A DNA stretch of 64,000 nt, taken from the NCBI GenBank assembly GCA_037379345.1, contig CM074515.1, forward strand, positions 44,893,743 to 44,957,742, read 5' to 3'. The stretch is from Perna viridis (lineage: Eukaryota). Both the position numbers and the translations under genes were made by a program. How positions within the stretch are numbered: position 1 is the stretch's first letter; every line of letters begins with the position of its first letter. The notes beneath the pieces were generated by a model. The model had not been told where the DNA came from. It saw nothing but the letters and a program-made list of their open reading frames with translations, and did not search any database. Positions 15,554-24,839 of the stretch are shown one piece after another.

Positions 15554-18500
15554 TTCATAGAATTGTGCGTAAACGACATCGAAAATTAAGCCATTATCTG
15601 TTTCATATATTTGTACTGATGAAAAAAACTGGTAGAAAATTAACATCCTGGTTTTGCACTACTTCAACGAAACAAGAGTAAATATTTTTTTTATTATTTA
15701 TATACTATTTACTTATTCATAATAACCTTTAATTGAGGTACCACCAGCACTATTTGAGATGCCATCATATAATGTAATCAAATAAAATACTTTAAAACAA
15801 TAATTTACTCTCGCTAGTATCATATTCTCTTACATAACACATTAATCAAAAGAAAAAAAATGTTTTGACAAATCTATTTGATATAGGCCTACAAAATGAA
15901 TGAAAACAAGATTATTGCGCATGATATATATCACATTATGTAACAAATAACAGGGTACTCAGCAGTGACTCGCATCATACAAGCAGTAAAATATCCAATA
16001 AACGATTAAAGGTATTTTGTCATGTAATCCATCATGCATAAGCTTAATTACATAAAAGGAGTTGATGCAATAAGCAAAAAGCTCTTAAGCCAATTATTTA
16101 ATCTGCATTTCAGGATTTCATAGGTTGCTAAGGTGATTGATTTTGAACTTCGCCTGGACTCGCCTTGAGTAAGTCCCCTGTCACAACTACAAAAAATATC
16201 ACTTATTTGATATCCTTTCAATAAAAGAGTTATATAACAAAACAAATCTAAGCGCACCCCTGATGATAAGGTTGTATTCGAACAAAGAAGCTTTGGTCAC
16301 TCATCAATGAAAAACTGGTTTCTTTCGTAGCGATTATTTGTTCGAAAAATTAACATTCATAATTATACCCTTTTTCATATTTTAAGGGAAGAGTTAGAGT
16401 AAAGAGAGGGTTTTCATTTTGTATTATTTGCCTTGTTGTTCTTATTCAAAGAGCATTGTTCATTTCCAAATATTTCTTTACTTCTTGCCATTTGCATTTT
16501 GATCTTATTTATTTTCTTTTCATTTAAGAAATATTACCAAGCTACATCTGGTCTTGTGTATCAAAGTGGCATTCCACAATGACACTGAGTCGCACTTTAC
16601 CGAGCATTAATACAACAAACAAGTCTTGAATCAATGTTTTACTGGCTTTTAGGTACACTAATTCCGTCAGACAGTGAGTTAATCTTGGAAGATCAAGAAA
16701 TTAATATTAACAACCATACTCTCTCTATATATTTTATAAGGTCGATGATTGGTAGCAAAACGTTCCTGTTAAATGGTGTAAGCTCAAACTGTTAAAATGC
16801 CGTGCGAGCTTATTTTATAACTTCATATTTTTGGCACAGGTACTTTTTGGTTTTCTTTTTACTTTTTTGCTATTTTTTGTTTTACATAAATGGTATCCTA
16901 TGAGCACTAGACTAAATCAACATAATGTTGATAAGCTAATTTCATGATTGCATGTCAACAATATTACTCAACATCTAGATCTGTTTTTAACGATCTGTCT
17001 TTTTTTGTCGTTGTTAAATAATCGACCGACTTTTTTTCAAACAATTGTTCAGGTAAAAGTTTTGGCAATTTATACAATGTAATGAAAATTGATTTTTACA
17101 CTATTATGATTTCCAGAAAACATCTGTACAATGATAAAATGTAGATTAGATAAAAACCATAGAAGCTTGGAATACCATCTTAGATCCACAAAAGATCATT
17201 TTCCGGTTCTTCTGTTTGTTTGTTTGTTTTGTTTGCTTGTTGATTGTTATAATTTGTTCTTTCTTCCTTTTTTCTATTTTAAGATCTTTGAACAAACCCC
17301 TACTAATGATTACATAAAGAATATGTCTTTGTCTCTTGATATATGTCATTGCAATAAGGTTGGAATAAAGCGTTAAATTTGCATTAGTTCTTCCAACTGT
17401 TATGATGTTATGAAATTATTTGCTATTAATACTAATCTATCATCATGTTTTAAATTTCAGAAAATGACAACCGCTAATGGTCATTAAATACTATCTGTAT
17501 TCATAGCACATGTCATTATCACTGTCCCAAGACTAGCGCTGGACACGTGCTGTCACGTGGCATTTGTAGAGCGGTCTTATTAATAGCCTTTCATTCTTAT
17601 GGATTCAATTTTCTTTGTAATCACAAAATCATACCTGCAGAAAATTAGTTGGCCTGAAATGACCAATGGCCACTCGATGGCCACTTCAGAGCCTTTGTGT
17701 AGTAAATCCAAGTATTGAGATGGCTTTGAAAAGTTTCGATCTAGCTTCCGGAAATGTATTGTCAAACAAAGCAATTTTGAGTGCTTCCTGATTTGAACAG
17801 TTCATTATAGAAAAATAATACCAACGAGAAACTAAAAAGATTATTTTCGGCTTCTTTAAACAATTACAAAATTAACGAATTATTTGTTGGCATCTGTTAC
17901 TGTTTTATCTTCACAAAACATACTTTATAATGTAACAATCCAAATATAATAATTGAAATAAAACATTACGACGCATTCAAATATTTAGCTAGCACACTAA
18001 TAACAAGCAAAAAAAATCTATTTTGTAAAAAGAAAATGCATTTCATGTAGAATATATTAAAGGGGCATATGATAAAGTCAAATGTATCTTAATGTTTGGA
18101 TGTTTTTGTTGTTTATCAGTAGCATAAAAAGCACACACCCCAACAAAAATCTACTTTTCATCGATTGCATCTTTATCAATATACTTTTATTTTCAAATGC
18201 TTCTGTGCATGCGATTCAATATATTTTATTTTTTATAAATGCAGTTGACCTCTAGATTTAAAATTTGACTATACCCTTTCTACGTTCTCAAAAACATCAC
18301 ACAAGAAGTTGGGTTTCCATGACTTAGCTTTGCCTCCTTCTCGTCGAGTAGTAATTTAATTCGTAGGTATTTCAAAGCATTGCTGATAGCTTATTAAAAC
18401 ATTACTAGTCAAACTTTAAGGCAAAATATTTGCAGCCAAAATTGCAAACGTTTCTTGCGGAAGACAAATTGCATCATGACTAATCAACATTAGTAACAAA

Positions 18501-18789
18501 ATAGCCATTTAATGTTCTTATATCGTGAGCTCGCTTATTTGTATCTTGTCAGTTATGGCTTACAGTGATAAAAAATACCATTAAACATCAAAGTTTTAGT
18601 TCTCCATTGCAACTTAGAAATAAAGAGTTGTAATAAAATACTTTACGTGGCGAATGTGAGTGATAGCTGAAAAACGTAGACGTCTCTATTTGTTTAATTG
18701 TTTAAAGTGTGGTCTGTTTAGGCATCACTTGCAAAATCTTAAATCGAAGGATTTTTTGGGGAGAATGACGAAGGAGCTATTTATTTATT

Positions 18790-18940
18790 TGTGTGTGTGT
18801 GTGTGCTTTTTTTTTTTAAATTGTACTTTTTTTAAAGTAGTAGTCTTTGTAAGAATCATGTAATCTGTGTGTGTGTGTGGTTTTTTTTTTTTAAATTGTA
18901 CTTTTTTTAAAGTAGTAGTCTTTGTAAGAATCATGTAATC
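18790..18940. repeat. Tandem duplication, 2 x about 75 bp, each headed by (GT)n-polyT
   Basis: aaattgtact...aaagtagtagtctttgtaagaatcatgtaatc occurs twice. Confidence 0.95.
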
Positions 18941-19727
18941 ATAATCATATTCTGTAATATGTAATACTAGTATACCCCAAAAAGGCTACATATTTTTATA
19001 TATGTTGTTAAGTTGCTTGATAGGTCTTTATGATGAAATGTATAATTATTCATTCCAATTTGTTTGTTCATAGGAGATAACCCACATTGAAAATCCAACA
19101 GTTTCAATTGTATTTCAATAGTCATTTACATAATCATCGCCATTGATTTTAAATTTTACTCTGCATTCTATATATTTTTTTATCTCCTATAAACAAGGGT
19201 TATATGAAAAGCCACATAATTTATGTTTACTAGAAAATTTTAAAAAATATCAAAACTAAAAATTTGTAGGTTTTCTACCATTAATTACATTTTGCAAGAT
19301 TCTTATCTAGGGTGGTACTTAACTACTTGTTAAAAAAGCAGATTCATTTTTTTTTTGTGTAGGGCTATCATTTTGTGCATTCATAATGCTCATTGATCGT
19401 AAGCTGTATGTGTGATGAACATGTATAGTATGTCCCTCAACATGCACATGTATTAACTGCACACCCGTATTATGCATTTAATCATTAAAAAAATTCTTAA
19501 TTATAAATTACATAAATCTTTGATCGTTCCAACATTCCAACGTTTTGATGTTCAAGTTATACTTTAATTTTATTTATTGCAATTGTTCAGTAAACAAAAT
19601 CAGTTATGTCACTACGAATATACGCTTTCTTTATTTTTTGTAATTCTGGTCGATTTTTTACATTATTACAACAGTTACACCTGCTTAACTGATCTGCCGT
19701 GCGTTACTTTATATTTGATGCTCTAAT

Positions 19728-20048
19728 GCTACATCAGGTTTCAAAGATCTCGATGTAGCAAAAATATTGTACTCTATATGACAATTGTGTTTTTTTTTAC
19801 CAGGAGACGAAGTCAAACGCAACATTATTTTGTGAGAAAGACAAATTACAATCAGTCTTTATCATCAGAGGTAGACGTAGAAAATAGTGGCAGTATTAAG
19901 ACACATACTGCTACCACACTCTCCAAAGAACAGATAGTGAAAACCATAAATCCGTTCTATCCTCTTTTGGTATCTCCACTCAAGACAAAAGAAATGTGAT
20001 CTTTGGTCCATGAATTGAATTCCAAATTTCCACAGGAGTACAAACAAA
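19728..20048 (+). mobile_element. Penelope-like element fragment (same family as 15235)
   Basis: ATSGFKDLDVAKIL...TATTLSKEQIV...SMN*IPNFH is homologous to the 15330-15425 segment and continues to a decayed WIPKLHK motif. Confidence 0.8.
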
Positions 20049-20049
20049 G

Positions 20050-20960
20050 AAAATCTTCATTGAACGAAGAACCCATCTACCACGGGGCAGTCTGTGATTT
20101 AAGTACTATGGCGTGGTAACAACCCTTCCTCTTTAAAATCTGACGACTTTGAAATAATATTACACCATTAAACATACCTAAGATCAGTTTCAAAAGATCT
20201 GAGTCCCTTGTTAAAACAGAAATAAAGAAACTGATTGTACGTTACACAAATGTACAAAGAACTACTAGAAGTTAACTGGTATGCCATCTCTCATCGTGTG
20301 TAATATCAATTTCAATTCTTACAATGAATGGTTGAGAACCACAGTACAACATAAATCTTACAATATGGATACAACCAATGTCATGCCCAAAACTGCTTTT
20401 AAAATATAGTGTTTTAATATCTATGTTTTTCCAAGACCCTATGAGCGAATCAATGTTAATACCTAAAAATGCTATCCTTAACGAATTTACAGGAATATCA
20501 TACCTAAAACCCTTACGAATAAGCATAATCATCGGCTTAGTTAACTTATTTGGTGTGCATTGAGCTTTCCGTGCTTTTAGAATATTAATGTTACATATAG
20601 GGTTGGAGAAACCTGCATGTTTCAATCGTTTACAAATACATCTATATTTAAACATGAGTTCCTTGTATCGGTTGAAAAATATTGTAAATGTTTGACGAGC
20701 TTGTGATATTGCAAACCTTGATGTAGTTATATCTCTGTTTTATAAAGATTTCTTTCGTTGAAATCCAAAACATTGTTACAAAAACGAGCAAATCGAACCA
20801 GTTGTAATATATAAACACCATATTATAGTGACAAGGGGACGTCACAATCAAAACACGGATTGTTGACAACAGAGAATAAAAAATCATCCCTTTTATCATA
20901 ATTTGTAGTGTTAAGCTTACCATTATTGATATAAATTCTGAGGTCAAAAAATGGGCATAT
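20050..20960 (-). mobile_element. Penelope-like (Naiad) RT C-terminus and 3' UTR
   Basis: GKLNTTNYDKRDDF.FSVVN.P.FD.DVPLS..YGVYILQLVRFARFCNNVLDFNERNL...HQG.QYHKLVK...KGFRYD...GINIDSLIGS; ORF ends at about 20425. Confidence 0.9.
20299..20362 (-). promoter_or_regulatory. Decayed SECIS-like hairpin
   Basis: TGTAA-gattt-ATGT-...ggttct-CAA..-agaatt..-TGAT-a-TTACA. Lower helix, 3' UGAN and part of the upper stem are present. The core reads AUGU instead of AUGA. It lies about 60 nt after the ORF end. Confidence 0.4.
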
Positions 20961-21235
20961 TTGCTTTAAAAAAAAAGTTCCTCGGGATATATATCTCAAG
21001 TATAGATTTTGAGCTCGTCGTTGTTTAGAACCAAGATATCGTCCAAATATCTAAAGGCCTTATATTGTTTTGTACCGAGTGTTGTTTATTTATCCTAGTC
21101 ATAAATTGTGACTCGTAACAATACAGTGATGTAAGCGATTTAAATGATGTCCAATTAACGTAGATATACGTTTTTCTTTACTAAAGAATGGTCTAAAATA
21201 ATTCGAACAAATATATTCACATCCCGATTTTTAAA

Positions 21236-21430
21236 GAGTTATCAAGGGAACCAAGGTTATAGCGGTAATCAAAAGAATGTAATCCAGGAACAAAGACCAG
21301 ACATGGAAAACAGACATACACAGCAAAGAACATAAAGTAACTAAAATCATACATACAAAGTAACAAAAGCAAATGAACAACTCGAACTCCACTATAAACT
21401 GGGAGCATGGACCAGGTGCACCGATAGGGT
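21236..21430 (-). mobile_element. Penelope-like element 3' terminal module (young copy)
   Basis: Reverse complement matches 15428-15553 with only a handful of mismatches over about 125 bp. Confidence 0.9.
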
Positions 21431-21739
21431 AAAAATACCATTTGATAAGATCTGCAAATTTTTGTTTTATGAAATTATGTGGAAGTATAGTGCAAAGAGT
21501 TTAAAATTCAAATATTTGAACTGATTCGAAAGATCCAATACAGGCATATGATTTATCAAGCACTTCAAGTGAGCTTTTAACACTCCAAAAATAGTTTATT
21601 CCACTATTTTCATAAGGTTTGTTGCAAACATTGATAATTATTTTTTATGGAATTGATAGCACTAGTTAGTAAAATAGAAAGACTGGTCTTAGAGCAATGA
21701 CCTAAAGAGGAAATAAATATATTTGTATATTTAAACATT

Positions 21740-23100
21740 ATGTGTGGGGTTTGGGAAGCCAGTACGCAGTAGGAACTTCCATGCTACTAGGCTCAGCTTG
21801 TAAAGAGATATCGACGAGTTATTTGTTCACAATTTCACTTCTTGAAAATTTAGTCAGTTGAGGTGTAGGCAAATTCGCAATTTCTTTTTGTAGAGTTTTA
21901 ATATGAAATTTACGTCAAATAACAATAACATTATTTGCAGCTTTATCAGCAGGAACAAAAACAAATTCCTTGCTTAGTTCATTTAATTGTGTTTCTTTTT
22001 TTTTGTGGGAAATTTTTATTAAGAGTAAGTGTTCCTAGAAATGTTTTATTAAGAGTAAGTGTTCCTCGAAATGTTTTATTCGGATTTTCATAACTGATCT
22101 TATGCTTTCTTGTCTACTTTTTCACGTTTTATCCATTTTATACAAAACGAATGGAATGTGTCTTGGGTGATGTTACAACATTTATTCCAATTGATAGTGG
22201 CTGGAGGACAATACATATGTTCTTTTTGAAGAAATGTTTTCACCTCTCGGTCGATAAAGGCACGGCATTCAGATTATAAGTAATAACATGGGAACTGGAA
22301 CCTAAAATATACTTTGAGTTACTGTAATTTCAGGATATTGGCGTATTTTCATAATATTCACATCTTTGCATAATTTGCTATAATGAAGGACATGTTTACG
22401 TGTCGGCTCTTCTTGTAAATATAGTAAATAGAAGAGAGTTCAGTATTAAAGCAAGGATAGTTTCCTTAACTGTATGATCATTCAGTTTAATTAATATATT
22501 TATGTTTTAGCAAATACTTTTTGTGGTTTTCTGGACGATCAATTTTTGGGAAAAGTTTGGAATAACAGTAGGCAATCATAATTTTAACAGTTTCATATTT
22601 TGGACTGCTGAACGAAATTGTATTTCCTCTATAGAATAGAATGTTAGTGACTGGTATTGAACATTGAATTAGGTTTGATTAAGAGTTGATGACGGTCATT
22701 GCTTATTTTTTTTTTAAATTATAATAAAGTTTGGAACCGAGGTATTGTTATTACGATGCTTCCGTTTATTGCGATTTAATCTGTGTCCATTAGACCTGTT
22801 GTTACGCAATGGTTAATTTAGAAACAATAACGAAAATACTGACCGAATCCATTTTTGAGATGTTTCCATTTCGTTAAGACCGAAAAGGTAAACTGTTCGT
22901 AATTTCCGTATCCATTCCAATTCAACCAATCTACGGGAATGACGGAATTTTGAATGAAATTCTCCTGACTTTCAAATGTTAAACATTTAAATGTTGTGTG
23001 TTATGATTGTGTTTTTGATAATGCTCTTAAATGACACTTTCAAATTTTTTTATCTGTTGAAACAATATAGATGTTCCTGTTCGTTTTGACAAGTTTTCAC
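21740..23100 (-). mobile_element. Naiad-clade Penelope-like element, N-terminal part: GIY-YIG endonuclease, linker, start of RT
   Basis: In 5'-3' order: LSKRT.EHLYCFN; RRLVELEWIRKLRTVYLFGLN (GIY-YIG C-terminal motif, about 22873-22935); TPIS*NYSNSKYILGSSSHVITYNL (CxC..GHVITGDL linker); FVFVPADKAANNVIVI*RKFH; VPTAYWLPK. The endonuclease lies upstream of RT. Confidence 0.88.
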
Positions 23101-23587
23101 ATTACAACTCATACGTTATGGCAGAGCGTGCCGTAACTACGCAGACGTTTTGTACCGTACTAGACATCTTACAATTGAGCTTCTGGAACAGCGTTAGGTT
23201 GTTACAAGATTGAAGACATCACTACAGAAATTTTATCAGTCGTCATCATGAACTTGTTAACCGAGTCATAGTTTTCCTTTTCTCTTTCGTTAACTCCGGA
23301 CTCTTTATGAGTAACTCGGCGGGTTTTCCTAGATAAACACCTAATCGTAAGTTATGATGTCATAATAGAGTTAAGTATTATGACGTCACAACTTACGACT
23401 AATTTTTCTCTTACGATTTTTTGTGAAAAGGTCCACTGGCCCATGATCCAAGTGTCAAGTTGATTCAAGGTTGTTCCTTAACTTTTGTCTCTGTACGTGT
23501 TATTTTGGTTATTTCATATTCTTTGTTGCGTGTATCTATTTTCTCTATATAGTCATTACCCTTGATCTTGGTTACCTTGATTACTCT
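23100..23587 (+). mobile_element. Penelope-like element RT C-terminal end and 3' module, interrupted by a MITE fragment
   Basis: LQLIRYGRACRNYADVLYR..LLEQ..RLKTSLQKFY.RHHELVNR, then 3' UTR ending ccttgattactct. Confidence 0.85.
23345..23435. mobile_element. Palindromic MITE fragment
   Basis: 23-bp inverted arms at 23345-23367 and 23376-23398 (2 mismatches, 8-nt loop), inserted within the PLE 3' UTR. Confidence 0.6.
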
Positions 23588-24339
23588 TTGATAAAGGATT
23601 ATATGTAAATCCACTGACATATAATTAAATTAAAATGACTACCCTAACAACGCACCTGGTCTATTATATTTTTTTAGTTTCATTTTCTCATTTGTCTGTG
23701 CGTGATGATGGGTGGGTAGGGTCCATTTTACTCAGATTTGTTTTCAAGATTTTATTGGAGTTTGGTGTGTGCATTGTGTTTGTTGTTGGTTGTTACTGTG
23801 TTCATTTTCTATGATTCGTCTTATATTTTGACAGTAGAATATCGTTTAACCGCAATAACCCTTAGTTTCACTCATCTGAAATTCAAAAATTAGTAAACAG
23901 TTCTAACTTTACAAATTGTTAAGTGCTAAAATAATATAAGATAATGCGGTTCTTTTAATGAACTGACAATTCGACACTTTTATTCTTGGTTTAATTGCCT
24001 GATATATTCTATAGATTTTTAATGTATGCCAGTGGATTCACAATAGATAAACTAATTATAACTGCTTATAATCAAATTGTTGCATTAGGACTTTTCGAAG
24101 ATCCATAATTGAGTTAACTGGAAAGTTTTGAAACGCTGTATTGTAGGACTTCATTACTCACATAGGACTTATTGTTGAAGGTTCCCATTTATAAATGGAA
24201 GATATTGATAATAGCAAGTTATTAATTTTAACAGTTGAGAACAAAATGTGTCAATTGTCTTAATCCATTACTTAGCAATGTTCAAATTATATTTCCAATT
24301 ATTCATTTCTATTTATTCATATTTTTTTCATAACTCTTT

Positions 24340-24656
24340 ATTTAGGTCTGCCTTTCAATCAAGGATTGGGCATTCTAAGCATAACTTGGAAATAGTAAAC
24401 TTACATTTGAAAATGTGTTGGGCTCTAAATTTTAATATGGAAGAAAAGGGTTGTCTGTGTATGAAGGCTGATACAAATATTTACAGCTAGATATATAAGG
24501 ATCATCGTGCTGAGATGAAGACTGAGTTTATATCAATTGATGATTCCTTATACAGATGAAAGCAATAATTTTTCATCGATAAAGACAAGACCATTGGGTC
24601 TCCACTATAGATGATAGACAAATATAAATAAAGAGATGTTCTGTTCTGTTCTGTTT
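24340..24656 (+). mobile_element. LINE 3' end, decayed
   Basis: Decayed NLEIVNLH.K.VLG-type ORF2 tail, then AATAAA followed directly by a (TGTTC)n tail. Confidence 0.55.
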
Positions 24657-24669
24657 GTGATTTAAATTA

Positions 24670-24819
24670 NNNNNNNNNNNNNNNNNNNNNNNNNNNNNNN
24701 NNNNNNNNNNNNNNNNNNNNNNNNNNNNNNNNNNNNNNNNNNNNNNNNNNNNNNNNNNNNNNNNNNNNNNNNNNNNNNNNNNNNNNNNNNNNNNNNNNNN
24801 NNNNNNNNNNNNNNNNNNN
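24670..24819. other. Assembly gap (150 N)
   Basis: Run of N. Confidence 1.
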
Positions 24820-24839
24820 TTTAAAAAAGCTTTCCCATC

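Follow-up and report, generated by a model that had tools for sequence, protein, structure and literature searches.

A decayed Naiad-type PLE in Perna viridis from a family that probably encoded a selenoprotein

Background

To our knowledge, transposons that code for selenoproteins have been described in a single study of 2021, as four families. Craig et al. 2021 (PMC8557442) present Naiad elements with selenocysteine (Sec) from clams, Naiad_Mmer and Naiad_Scon, and from Stegodyphus spiders; the Sec sites of the clam elements are the first cysteine of the CCHH finger, the cysteine before GIY-YIG, and the cysteine eight residues after the DKA motif (DKA+8). The window analysed here is a stretch of 64,000 nucleotides of Perna viridis (contig CM074515.1, positions 44,893,743 to 44,957,742), in which a Naiad-type PLE with TGA at two conserved cysteines had been predicted from the nucleotide sequence. 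The original prediction gave both as Sec sites of the published elements; DKA+8 is indeed listed there, but the other site, in the CxC motif, is not (PMC8557442). The order of motifs in the window, with a Lys/Arg-rich (KR-rich) block, CxC, GxKF/Y and DKA, agrees with that of the published Naiads (PMC8557442). We consider it probable (roughly 80%) that positions 23096-20098 of the minus strand are a dead relic of a Naiad-type PLE, and that the active masters of its family encoded a selenoprotein with UGA at invariant cysteine codons.

Anatomy and decay of the copy in the window

The copy and its surroundings contain the following features (window positions):

20098-23096, minus strand: putative Sec-type Naiad PLE copy, decayed, 5'-truncated and 3'-shortened, with 70-78% identity to other genomic copies
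22873-22923, minus strand: C-terminal catalytic block of the GIY-YIG endonuclease, ELEWIRKLRTVYLFGLN, by homology to Naiad proteins
22717-22812, minus strand: Lys/Arg-rich linker block, RNNRSNGHRLNRNKRKHRNNNTS
22324-22332, minus strand: CxC motif, read TGA-AAT-TAC in the window, the TGA being 22332-22330
22270-22290, minus strand: HVITYNL, the conserved GHVITGNL block, 11 residues after CxC
21939-21947, minus strand: DKA motif, the Naiad-specific form of DKG, within ADKAANN
21915-21917, minus strand: TGA at the DKA+8 cysteine, a published Sec site, directly after ADKAANNVIVI
21233-21432, no strand assigned: unrelated short-repeat insertion of 200 bp that divides the RT region
20604-21133, minus strand: RT core and thumb, with YLDD at 21049-21038, then FLDL...YDKRDDF...YGVYISQLVRFAR downstream
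20356-20358, minus strand: site of the family's in-frame TGA, probably the true terminator (TGA in 19 of 27 copies, AGA in the window)
20291-20371, minus strand: degraded counterpart of the SECIS-like hairpin of the family, with the core ATGT at 20352-20349 instead of ATGA
23092-23339, plus strand: piece of another, abundant repeat that flanks the copy in inverted orientation and does not belong to it

Judged from its architecture and diagnostic motifs, the window copy is a Naiad-type PLE. The best full-length homologues have an N-terminal GIY-YIG domain followed by RVT_1, and in the window the Glu/Asn block of the endonuclease (22923-22873) lies upstream of RT in the same orientation. The predicted order of endonuclease and RT was correct, whereas the residues that had been taken for the GIY-YIG motif (ELEWIRKL...GLN) are the C-terminal Glu/Asn block; the GIY...YVGET core, seen in family copies L037, L038 and L051, is missing from the window copy because of 5' truncation at approximately 23096. 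The co-oriented RT C-terminus was also located as predicted, at 21133-20604, and the segments 20050-20960 and 21740-23100, which had been joined as one element, do represent one family, being contiguous in its other genomic copies. CxC is followed after 11 residues by HVITGNL in nine full-length Naiad proteins as in the window, and this identical spacing confirms the reading frame at CxC. The GxKF/Y motif, for which NSKY had been mistaken, is the decayed KEHMY at 22225-22211 (minus strand), where other copies read KGPKY.

The decay of the copy is extensive. Compared by tblastn with Naiad proteins and the intact relative L063, the copy changes frame at least five times and contains more than 15 stops. 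Its 200-bp insertion interrupts the stretch between RT3(A) and RT4(B), where Naiads have the IFD. The stop-free pieces, too short and decayed, gave no match in a Pfam search, nor did the 155-residue C-terminal piece in a protein homology search, and no transcription of the copy was found. Being truncated, interrupted, frameshifted, untranscribed and broken in its SECIS core, the window copy is functionless; the suggestion that its mobility would be coupled to the host Sec machinery was overstated for a copy whose mobility is long dead. Other copies of the family are spread over at least 10 different contigs, and no intact one was found in the genome. An extension of the family tail past 20098 in the window, suggested by eye, had no support from blastn. 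The flanking repeat reads as a Naiad ORF C-terminus on the plus strand at 23093-23239. No canonical hammerhead ribozyme was found at window positions 17000-25000 (E<=10) or in 17 family loci (E<=1); a twister-like motif turned up instead.

TGA codons at cysteine sites

Codon states were tallied site by site over the family copies, a local majority being used just for the RNA motif of about 90 nt described below. The first cysteine codon of CxC (CxC-1) is TGA in 22 of 28 independent genomic copies. The second (CxC-2) is TGA in 18 of 28; the window's subfamily has TGC there, and the window copy TAC. DKA+8 is TGT in 18, TGA in 9 and TGC in 1 of 33 copies. A majority of TGT or TGC at both sites, which would have told against the original prediction, was not found: TGA is the majority codon at CxC-1, and although at DKA+8 the family majority is TGT, TGA is the codon there of every member of the window's subfamily (U-N-C at CxC, marked by a common TCC codon) and of the relatives described below. 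Across CxC-1, CxC-2 and DKA+8, the sub-lineages display three combinations of TGA (U) and TGY (C): U-U-C, U-U-U and U-C-U. When copies were aligned to L063, stops reached a frequency of at least 20% in 6 of 720 codon columns, namely CxC-1, CxC-2, DKA+8, one serine column with scattered one-step stops, and two columns in the frameshifted end of L063; 11 other cysteine columns are TGT or TGC. Tallies for the N-terminal sites, which are absent from the window copy, rest on two or three copies: the first cysteine of the CCHH finger is TGA in all three copies that reach that far, and at the cysteine before GIY-YIG, L037 has TGA and L038 has TAA.

The two TGAs of the window copy might have been private decay mutations that changed TGY to TGA and fell on cysteine codons by chance, since one change suffices, the copy has many other stops and frameshifts, and most family copies have TGT at DKA+8. 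The chance of this is negligible, because the TGA at 22332-22330 is common to the 22 copies counted above, that at DKA+8 recurs in nine further copies, among them the three remaining members of the window's subfamily, and both sites are likewise TGA in the intact relatives of other datasets. The census of copies already refutes private decay, and on the evidence of the aligned codons the two TGAs of the window are inherited. Their placement, at the first cysteine of CxC (by homology) and exactly eight residues after DKA, stands as predicted.

Diverged but intact relatives retrieved from other datasets (L061/L062 and L063) each have more than 430 open codons, interrupted by exactly two TGAs; these lie at CxC-1 and DKA+8, as in the window copy. 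DKA+8 is TGA in all three relatives (L061/62, L063 and L065). Between relatives, in comparisons made at dS > 1, dN/dS is 0.14 upstream of the TGAs, 0.08 between them and 0.13 downstream, values from which the two UGAs are judged to be kept under clear purifying selection. Some database proteins, such as P0084, begin and end exactly at putative Sec codons; Sec-Naiads are systematically fragmented in annotation because gene callers cut ORFs at every UGA.

Candidate SECIS element and host selenocysteine machinery

The SECIS-like hairpin predicted downstream of the RT has a counterpart at 20371-20291, with TGAT at 20308-20305 and an apical AA at 20333-20332, but in the window its core is mutated and its fold is lost (z = +1.39). 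In the family hairpin, helix I is 15 bp long and the core reads UGAU/UGAU, in agreement with UGAN/KGAW; there are also an unpaired AA and a mini-helix. Its pairing is 80-92% in the copies, as opposed to 4-64% with slid partners, and its fold z-scores in copies are -2.3 to -4.1. The unpaired AA is 15 nt after the core; in the classical SECISearch pattern this distance is shorter, 10-13 nt.

Searches with Rfam SECIS_1 gave divided results. Positions 2394-2451 of L063 match the full model (E = 6e-4) with 28.4 bits, which falls short of Rfam's gathering score of 35, whereas L064 and L065 have no SECIS match. The family hairpin aligns to the L063 element with ATGA, AA and GATTTTA in register, and helix II differs yet is paired. 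SECIS_1 matched nothing in the window or in 17 whole family loci, and did not match the family hairpin even at E<=10 in 151-nt slices of the two best copies. A genome-wide search, in which 129 of about 20,000 candidates were scored, returned two sub-threshold matches unrelated to the family. The L063 match and the homologous family hairpin with its UGAU/UGAU core are candidates for the predicted 3' SECIS, although Rfam is silent on the latter. A stricter structural scan passed 2 of 16 copies, both at the family hairpin (about 0.2 in shuffles), and missed the L063 element because its 3' core reads CGAU. A loose pattern scan (9-13 nt) of the family copies found nothing recurrent, and a short ORF-internal hairpin that it yielded at the YENSGINYFW codons was judged a chance occurrence. 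RNAalifold found no structure in the decayed copies. Function of the family hairpin as a SECIS is an inference from its alignment and folding.

The host genome has two tRNA-Sec genes, which score 78.7 bits against a cut-off of 47, and a gene for SepSecS with several exons. The UGA codons could instead have been read through or reassigned independently of a SECIS, for example by near-cognate insertion of Trp or Cys, and the atypical form of the family hairpin is in keeping with such a reading, as is the computational nature of the Sec case for the published Naiads (PMC8557442). It is nevertheless very improbable, given that UGA occurs only at cysteine positions, a hallmark of Sec/Cys exchange, that diverged families have a SECIS-like element at a conserved position, and that the host possesses tRNA-Sec and SepSecS. 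Actual decoding of UGA as Sec in the window's family is presumed from comparative data.

Origin of the family

The TGA census, the intact relatives and the SECIS-like hairpin agree with the original prediction of a decayed copy of a Sec transposon family. The ORF of this family would have encoded an N-terminal GIY-YIG endonuclease, a KR-rich linker, CxC, DKA and a reverse transcriptase, in that order. UGA at invariant cysteines would have been read as Sec by the host tRNA-Sec machinery, its recoding directed by an ORF-terminal SECIS stem-loop; a UGA inside the base helix of the SECIS was most likely the real stop codon. Sec would have occupied the first cysteine of the CCHH finger, both cysteines of CxC and DKA+8, and probably the cysteine before GIY-YIG as well, with sub-lineages differing in TGA or TGY at CxC-1, CxC-2 and DKA+8. 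The sub-lineage of the window copy would have had U-N-C at CxC and U at DKA+8, the pattern of the intact relatives.

Alternatively, the family may have spread from a defective master broken by TGA and copied in trans by intact Cys-type Naiads, with no use of Sec. Cys-type Naiads that could have supplied RT are numerous in the genome, their frames being open over as many as 870 codons; the failure to find an intact copy of the window's family and the failure of Rfam to recognize its hairpin also fit this scenario. It is unlikely because the prevalent stops, among about 700 in-frame columns, are only at invariant cysteine codons and are always TGA; because copies multiplied in each of three sub-lineages that differ in their TGA/TGY combination; and because diverged relatives retain both TGAs, with dN/dS of about 0.1 on either side and a SECIS_1 match in one of them. 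Published precedent exists for two or three of the same sites (PMC8557442).

Within the favoured reading, that of a selenoprotein-encoding family, we lean slightly towards the view that Sec use extended to both cysteines of CxC (Sec-x-Sec), giving up to five Sec codons per protein, and that sub-lineages exchanged Cys for Sec, and Sec for Cys, at individual sites as they multiplied. The window's family would be a further Sec-Naiad family in another genome, with intact relatives in other public datasets. New features are the putative Sec at CxC, the close sub-lineages that differ only in which cysteines are Sec, and the conservation of UGA under purifying selection, which is comparative evidence beyond consensus ORFs. 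If the Sec-x-Sec reading is true, the family is a natural series bearing on the role of Sec in metal-binding-like motifs, and on how exchange of Cys and Sec proceeds with a SECIS in place.

Comparison with known systems

Naiad_Mmer and Naiad_Scon of clams resemble the window's family in possessing an N-terminal GIY-YIG endonuclease and RT, DKA and a CxC linker, UGA at DKA+8, and several putative Sec codons per ORF, with a SECIS, in the window's family a candidate one, at its end. The first cysteine of the CCHH finger (TGA in three family copies) and the cysteine before GIY-YIG (TGA in one) are probable further sites in common. Naiad_Mmer, as described (PMC8557442), also has a UGA just before or inside the SECIS that is a probable stop. 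In contrast to the clam elements, the window's family has UGA at one or both cysteines of CxC, sites not listed in PMC8557442, for up to five positions with UGA in place of a cysteine codon, and its sub-lineages toggle between TGA and TGY at CxC-2 and DKA+8. Its putative SECIS has a long helix II and looks like type II, whereas those of the clam Naiads are grade A type I (PMC8557442), and all of its copies seen in the genome are dead.

The Naiads of Stegodyphus spiders likewise have UGA at DKA+8 and, as is probable for the window's family too, before GIY-YIG, together with a 3' SECIS, for which the window's family has a candidate; but they place Sec in a CX2-5CxxC finger and have no IFD, whereas the window's family probably has the clam-type CCHH site. 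Selenoprotein P, a multi-Sec protein of bivalves, is similar in that many UGAs of one mRNA are decoded by means of 3' SECIS elements, but it is a host gene with no kinship to the window's family in sequence or function. The abundant Cys-type Naiads of the same genome share the domain order and motifs of the window's family, with 35-37% protein identity in the linker and 5'-truncated copies, but have TGY for every one of these cysteines and long open frames, and so are probably younger and selenium-independent.

Structure and identity of the retroelement copy

The window contains a decayed copy of a Naiad, a type of Penelope-like retroelement, which is one member of a repeat family and has the following features:

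23096-20098, minus strand: the decayed Naiad copy
23092-23339, inverted orientation: fragment of another, very abundant repeat, upstream of the truncation point
22923-22873, minus strand: ELEWIRKLRTVYLFGLN, the endonuclease Glu/Asn catalytic block
22812-22717, minus strand: KR block
22332-22324, minus strand: CxC
22332-22330, minus strand: TGA at the first Cys of CxC (CxC-1), the frame being set by CxC, 11 aa and HVITGNL as in homologues
22290-22270, minus strand: HVITYNL
21947-21939, minus strand: DKA
21917-21915, minus strand: TGA exactly 8 aa after DKA (DKA+8)
21233-21432: unrelated insertion of ~200 bp between the two halves, with similar sequences elsewhere (87-95% identity, either orientation)
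21049-21038, minus strand: YLDD

A search of the host genome (723 Mb, 46 contigs) with this copy returned dozens of family copies at 70-78% identity. The halves at 20050-20960 and 21740-23100, which the original prediction had assigned to one element, are contiguous in several of them (e.g., C2:23860398-23863069 and C1:22424918-22427288) and therefore belong to one family. The window copy is truncated at its 5' end (~23096), and its family similarity ends at ~20098, some 330 nt short of the end of other copies. It is badly decayed: tblastn alignments across it change frame at least five times and pass more than 15 stops. Both 21233-21432 and 23092-23339 are parts of a single very abundant short repeat (~7000 first-look candidates, ~87% identity), and RNA reads link 21432 to 23287-23333 on opposite strands. 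The plus-strand translation of 23093-23239 resembles a Naiad ORF C-terminus.

A HMMER search with 247 aa of uninterrupted frame from a sister copy (L040:1609-2349) identified full-length proteins of 850-1040 aa in which GIY-YIG is the N-terminal domain and RVT_1 the C-terminal one. The motif order in an alignment of nine of these agrees with that of Naiads (Craig et al. 2021, PMC8557442): a CX2-5CxxC finger, Cys-GIY...CxxC...YVGET, RE..W...L...YPYGLN and a KR-rich block, then CxC, GHVITGNL, KGPKYR, PADKA.NN....C and RT. The stretch at 22923-22873, previously read as the GIY-YIG motif, does belong to the endonuclease, but homologue alignment identifies it as the Glu/Asn catalytic block and not the GIY-YIG motif proper.

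TGA codons at conserved cysteines

Among 28 non-redundant copies, spread over ten or more contigs, TGA occupies CxC-1 in 22 and the second Cys (CxC-2) in 18; at DKA+8, 33 copies have TGT (18), TGA (9) or TGC (1). These counts rule out private mutations as the origin of the two window TGAs, and a T-to-A transversion could not credibly have recurred by chance in 9 copies out of 33. Judged from this comparison of sequences, both TGAs are inherited and not products of decay, a family trait as originally proposed, with TGT the commoner codon at DKA+8.

Many copies translate in an unbroken frame from ...CKDVNIKENMPIS through U-N-U or U-N-C (U being a TGA codon) into SNSKYIYG.SSHVITGNL. Three haplotypes occur over CxC-1, CxC-2 and DKA+8: U-U-C, the commonest; U-U-U (copies L039, L050, L053 and L056); and U-C-U (L036, L051 and L059). 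The window's U-Y-U is U-C-U with TGC changed to TAC. A diagnostic TCC codon ahead of the first TGA is common to the U-C-U group, which is therefore a true sub-lineage.

Codons were tallied column by column with the near-intact relative L063 as reference; of the 720 columns covered by 8 copies or more, six have stops at a frequency of 20% or higher. Three of these are CxC-1, CxC-2 and DKA+8, all with TGA; the others are a Ser column, where one-step stops are scattered, and two within the frameshifted end of L063 itself. At eleven further Cys columns the codon is TGT or TGC, with TGA essentially nil, and a second tally against nine Naiad proteins gave the same picture. The ancestral ORF of the family is thus open apart from TGA at Cys.

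The GIY-YIG core, missing from the window copy, is reached by three of the examined copies, all of which read T-TGA-AGC-AAA-CCG-GGA-TGT-...-TAT-GTA-GGT-GAA-AC (T-U-S-K-P-G-C...YVGET). In these small samples, all three have TGA at the CCHH finger's first Cys; at the Cys preceding GIY, L037 has TGA and L038 has TAA.

Intact relatives and selection

The database protein P0084 begins just after CxC and stops 7 aa after DKA. Its contigs, L061 and L062, derive from two sequencing runs and hold a single frame, more than 500 codons long, whose only stop codons are two TGAs, in the contexts ...PST-U-D-C-AISKF..GHVITGDL... and ...PADKAANNVVVV-U-RKYY. Both TGAs are also carried by the more distant L063 (~82% protein identity), and another relative, L065, has TGA at DKA+8. 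The L061-L063 comparison has saturated synonymous sites (dS >1), with dN/dS values of 0.14 before the first TGA, 0.08 from the first to the second and 0.13 beyond the second. These values in all three segments, with both TGAs retained, indicate that the ORF is translated under selection and that its UGAs are read through. The copy census, intact relatives and ORF tally together bear out the original observation and its main interpretation, and we infer that the window copy is a decayed member of a selenocysteine (Sec)-recoding Naiad family in which UGA would be decoded as Sec.

SECIS-like hairpin

L063:2394-2451, starting 137 nt past the TAA stop, matches the Rfam SECIS_1 model along its full length and has AUGA, AAA and GA at the proper positions; its 28.4 bits (E = 6e-4 on a 191-nt slice) are below the gathering score of 35 and similar to the best host-genome matches. 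The window's family has a positionally homologous stretch with these features as the majority state:

Base: 15-bp helix I and a 4x4 internal loop
Core: AUGAU opposite UGAU
Upper part: helix II, unpaired AA and a CCC/GGG mini-helix

The core agrees with UGAN/KGAW, the consensus cited in the SECISearch3 paper. In alignment with L063, ATGA, AA and GATTTTA are in register, and helix II differs in sequence and pairs in both. Pairing over 20 copies reaches 88% for helix I, 92% for helix II and 80% for the mini-helix, versus 4-64% with partners slid; AUGA, AA and GA are all intact in 7 of the 20, and single-copy folds have z-scores of -2.3 to -4.1. The hairpin of the window's family is not matched by Rfam, even when short slices are searched at E<=10. 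The AA sits 15 nt from the core, a longer distance than in the classical SECIS pattern. Helix I contains an in-frame TGA 4 nt ahead of the core; kept by 19 of 27 copies, it is probably the family's terminator, because a UGA so near a SECIS should not be recoded. The window copy retains a homologue of the hairpin, as predicted, but its core is ATGT, its terminator TGA has become AGA, its 3' strand is partly deleted and the fold is lost (z = +1.39).

Within the ORF (window ~21620, YENSGINYFW codons), ATGA is followed by a perfect 8-bp hairpin, which recurs at the same place in 7 copies; it matches a loose SECIS pattern and was judged a chance palindrome in AT-rich coding sequence. A Twister-P5-like motif (L024:1467-1533, minus strand; 27.3 bits, gathering score 37.6) lies ~250 nt past the SECIS-like hairpin, in the family 3' tail that the window copy lacks. 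Naiads are reportedly devoid of hammerheads.

Host machinery and activity

The host genome encodes two clear tRNA-Sec genes on contig C8 (78.7 bits, cut-off 47) and a multi-exon SepSecS gene. A tandem array of ~50 tRNA-like genes with a 520-bp period is present at C6:43388203-43414625, each scoring 45.9 bits on the tRNA-Sec model, just below the cut-off of 47.

No intact Sec-type family member was found in the genome, where the best matches to P0084 have 44-55% identity and are full of stops. Many Cys-type Naiads (TGY at the conserved Cys; 35-37% identity) contain stop-free frames as long as 870 aa, and are probably young or active families alongside a dead Sec-type family. Cys-type copies occur in many places (e.g., C12:27179419-27179730 and C3:51153140-51153451).

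Same-species RNA-seq gave essentially zero depth on the window copy itself. Depth was confined to the inserted and flanking short repeats (2000-3000x on 21233-21432), whose reads continue into unlike flanks and therefore come from other, highly expressed loci. P0179, a relative of the RT filed under a gamma-proteobacterial symbiont MAG of a lucinid clam, is almost certainly clam-host retroelement DNA mis-binned into a bacterial genome.

Comparison with known Naiads

Sec-recoding Naiads are already known as a kind (Craig et al. 2021, PMC8557442). All four published Sec-Naiads have Sec at DKA+8, a site that the original prediction also gave, whereas CxC, likewise given there, is absent from the Sec sites listed in that study. 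The CCHH first Cys and the Cys before GIY are further Sec sites of clam Sec-Naiads in that study, and the same two N-terminal sites have TGA here, in three copies at most. The arrangement of a probable terminator UGA in or near the putative SECIS resembles that of Naiad_Mmer (same study). New features of this family are a putative Sec at the CxC motif, with UGA at as many as five Cys positions; sites that toggle between TGA and TGY among sub-lineages; and comparative evidence for selection across the UGAs.
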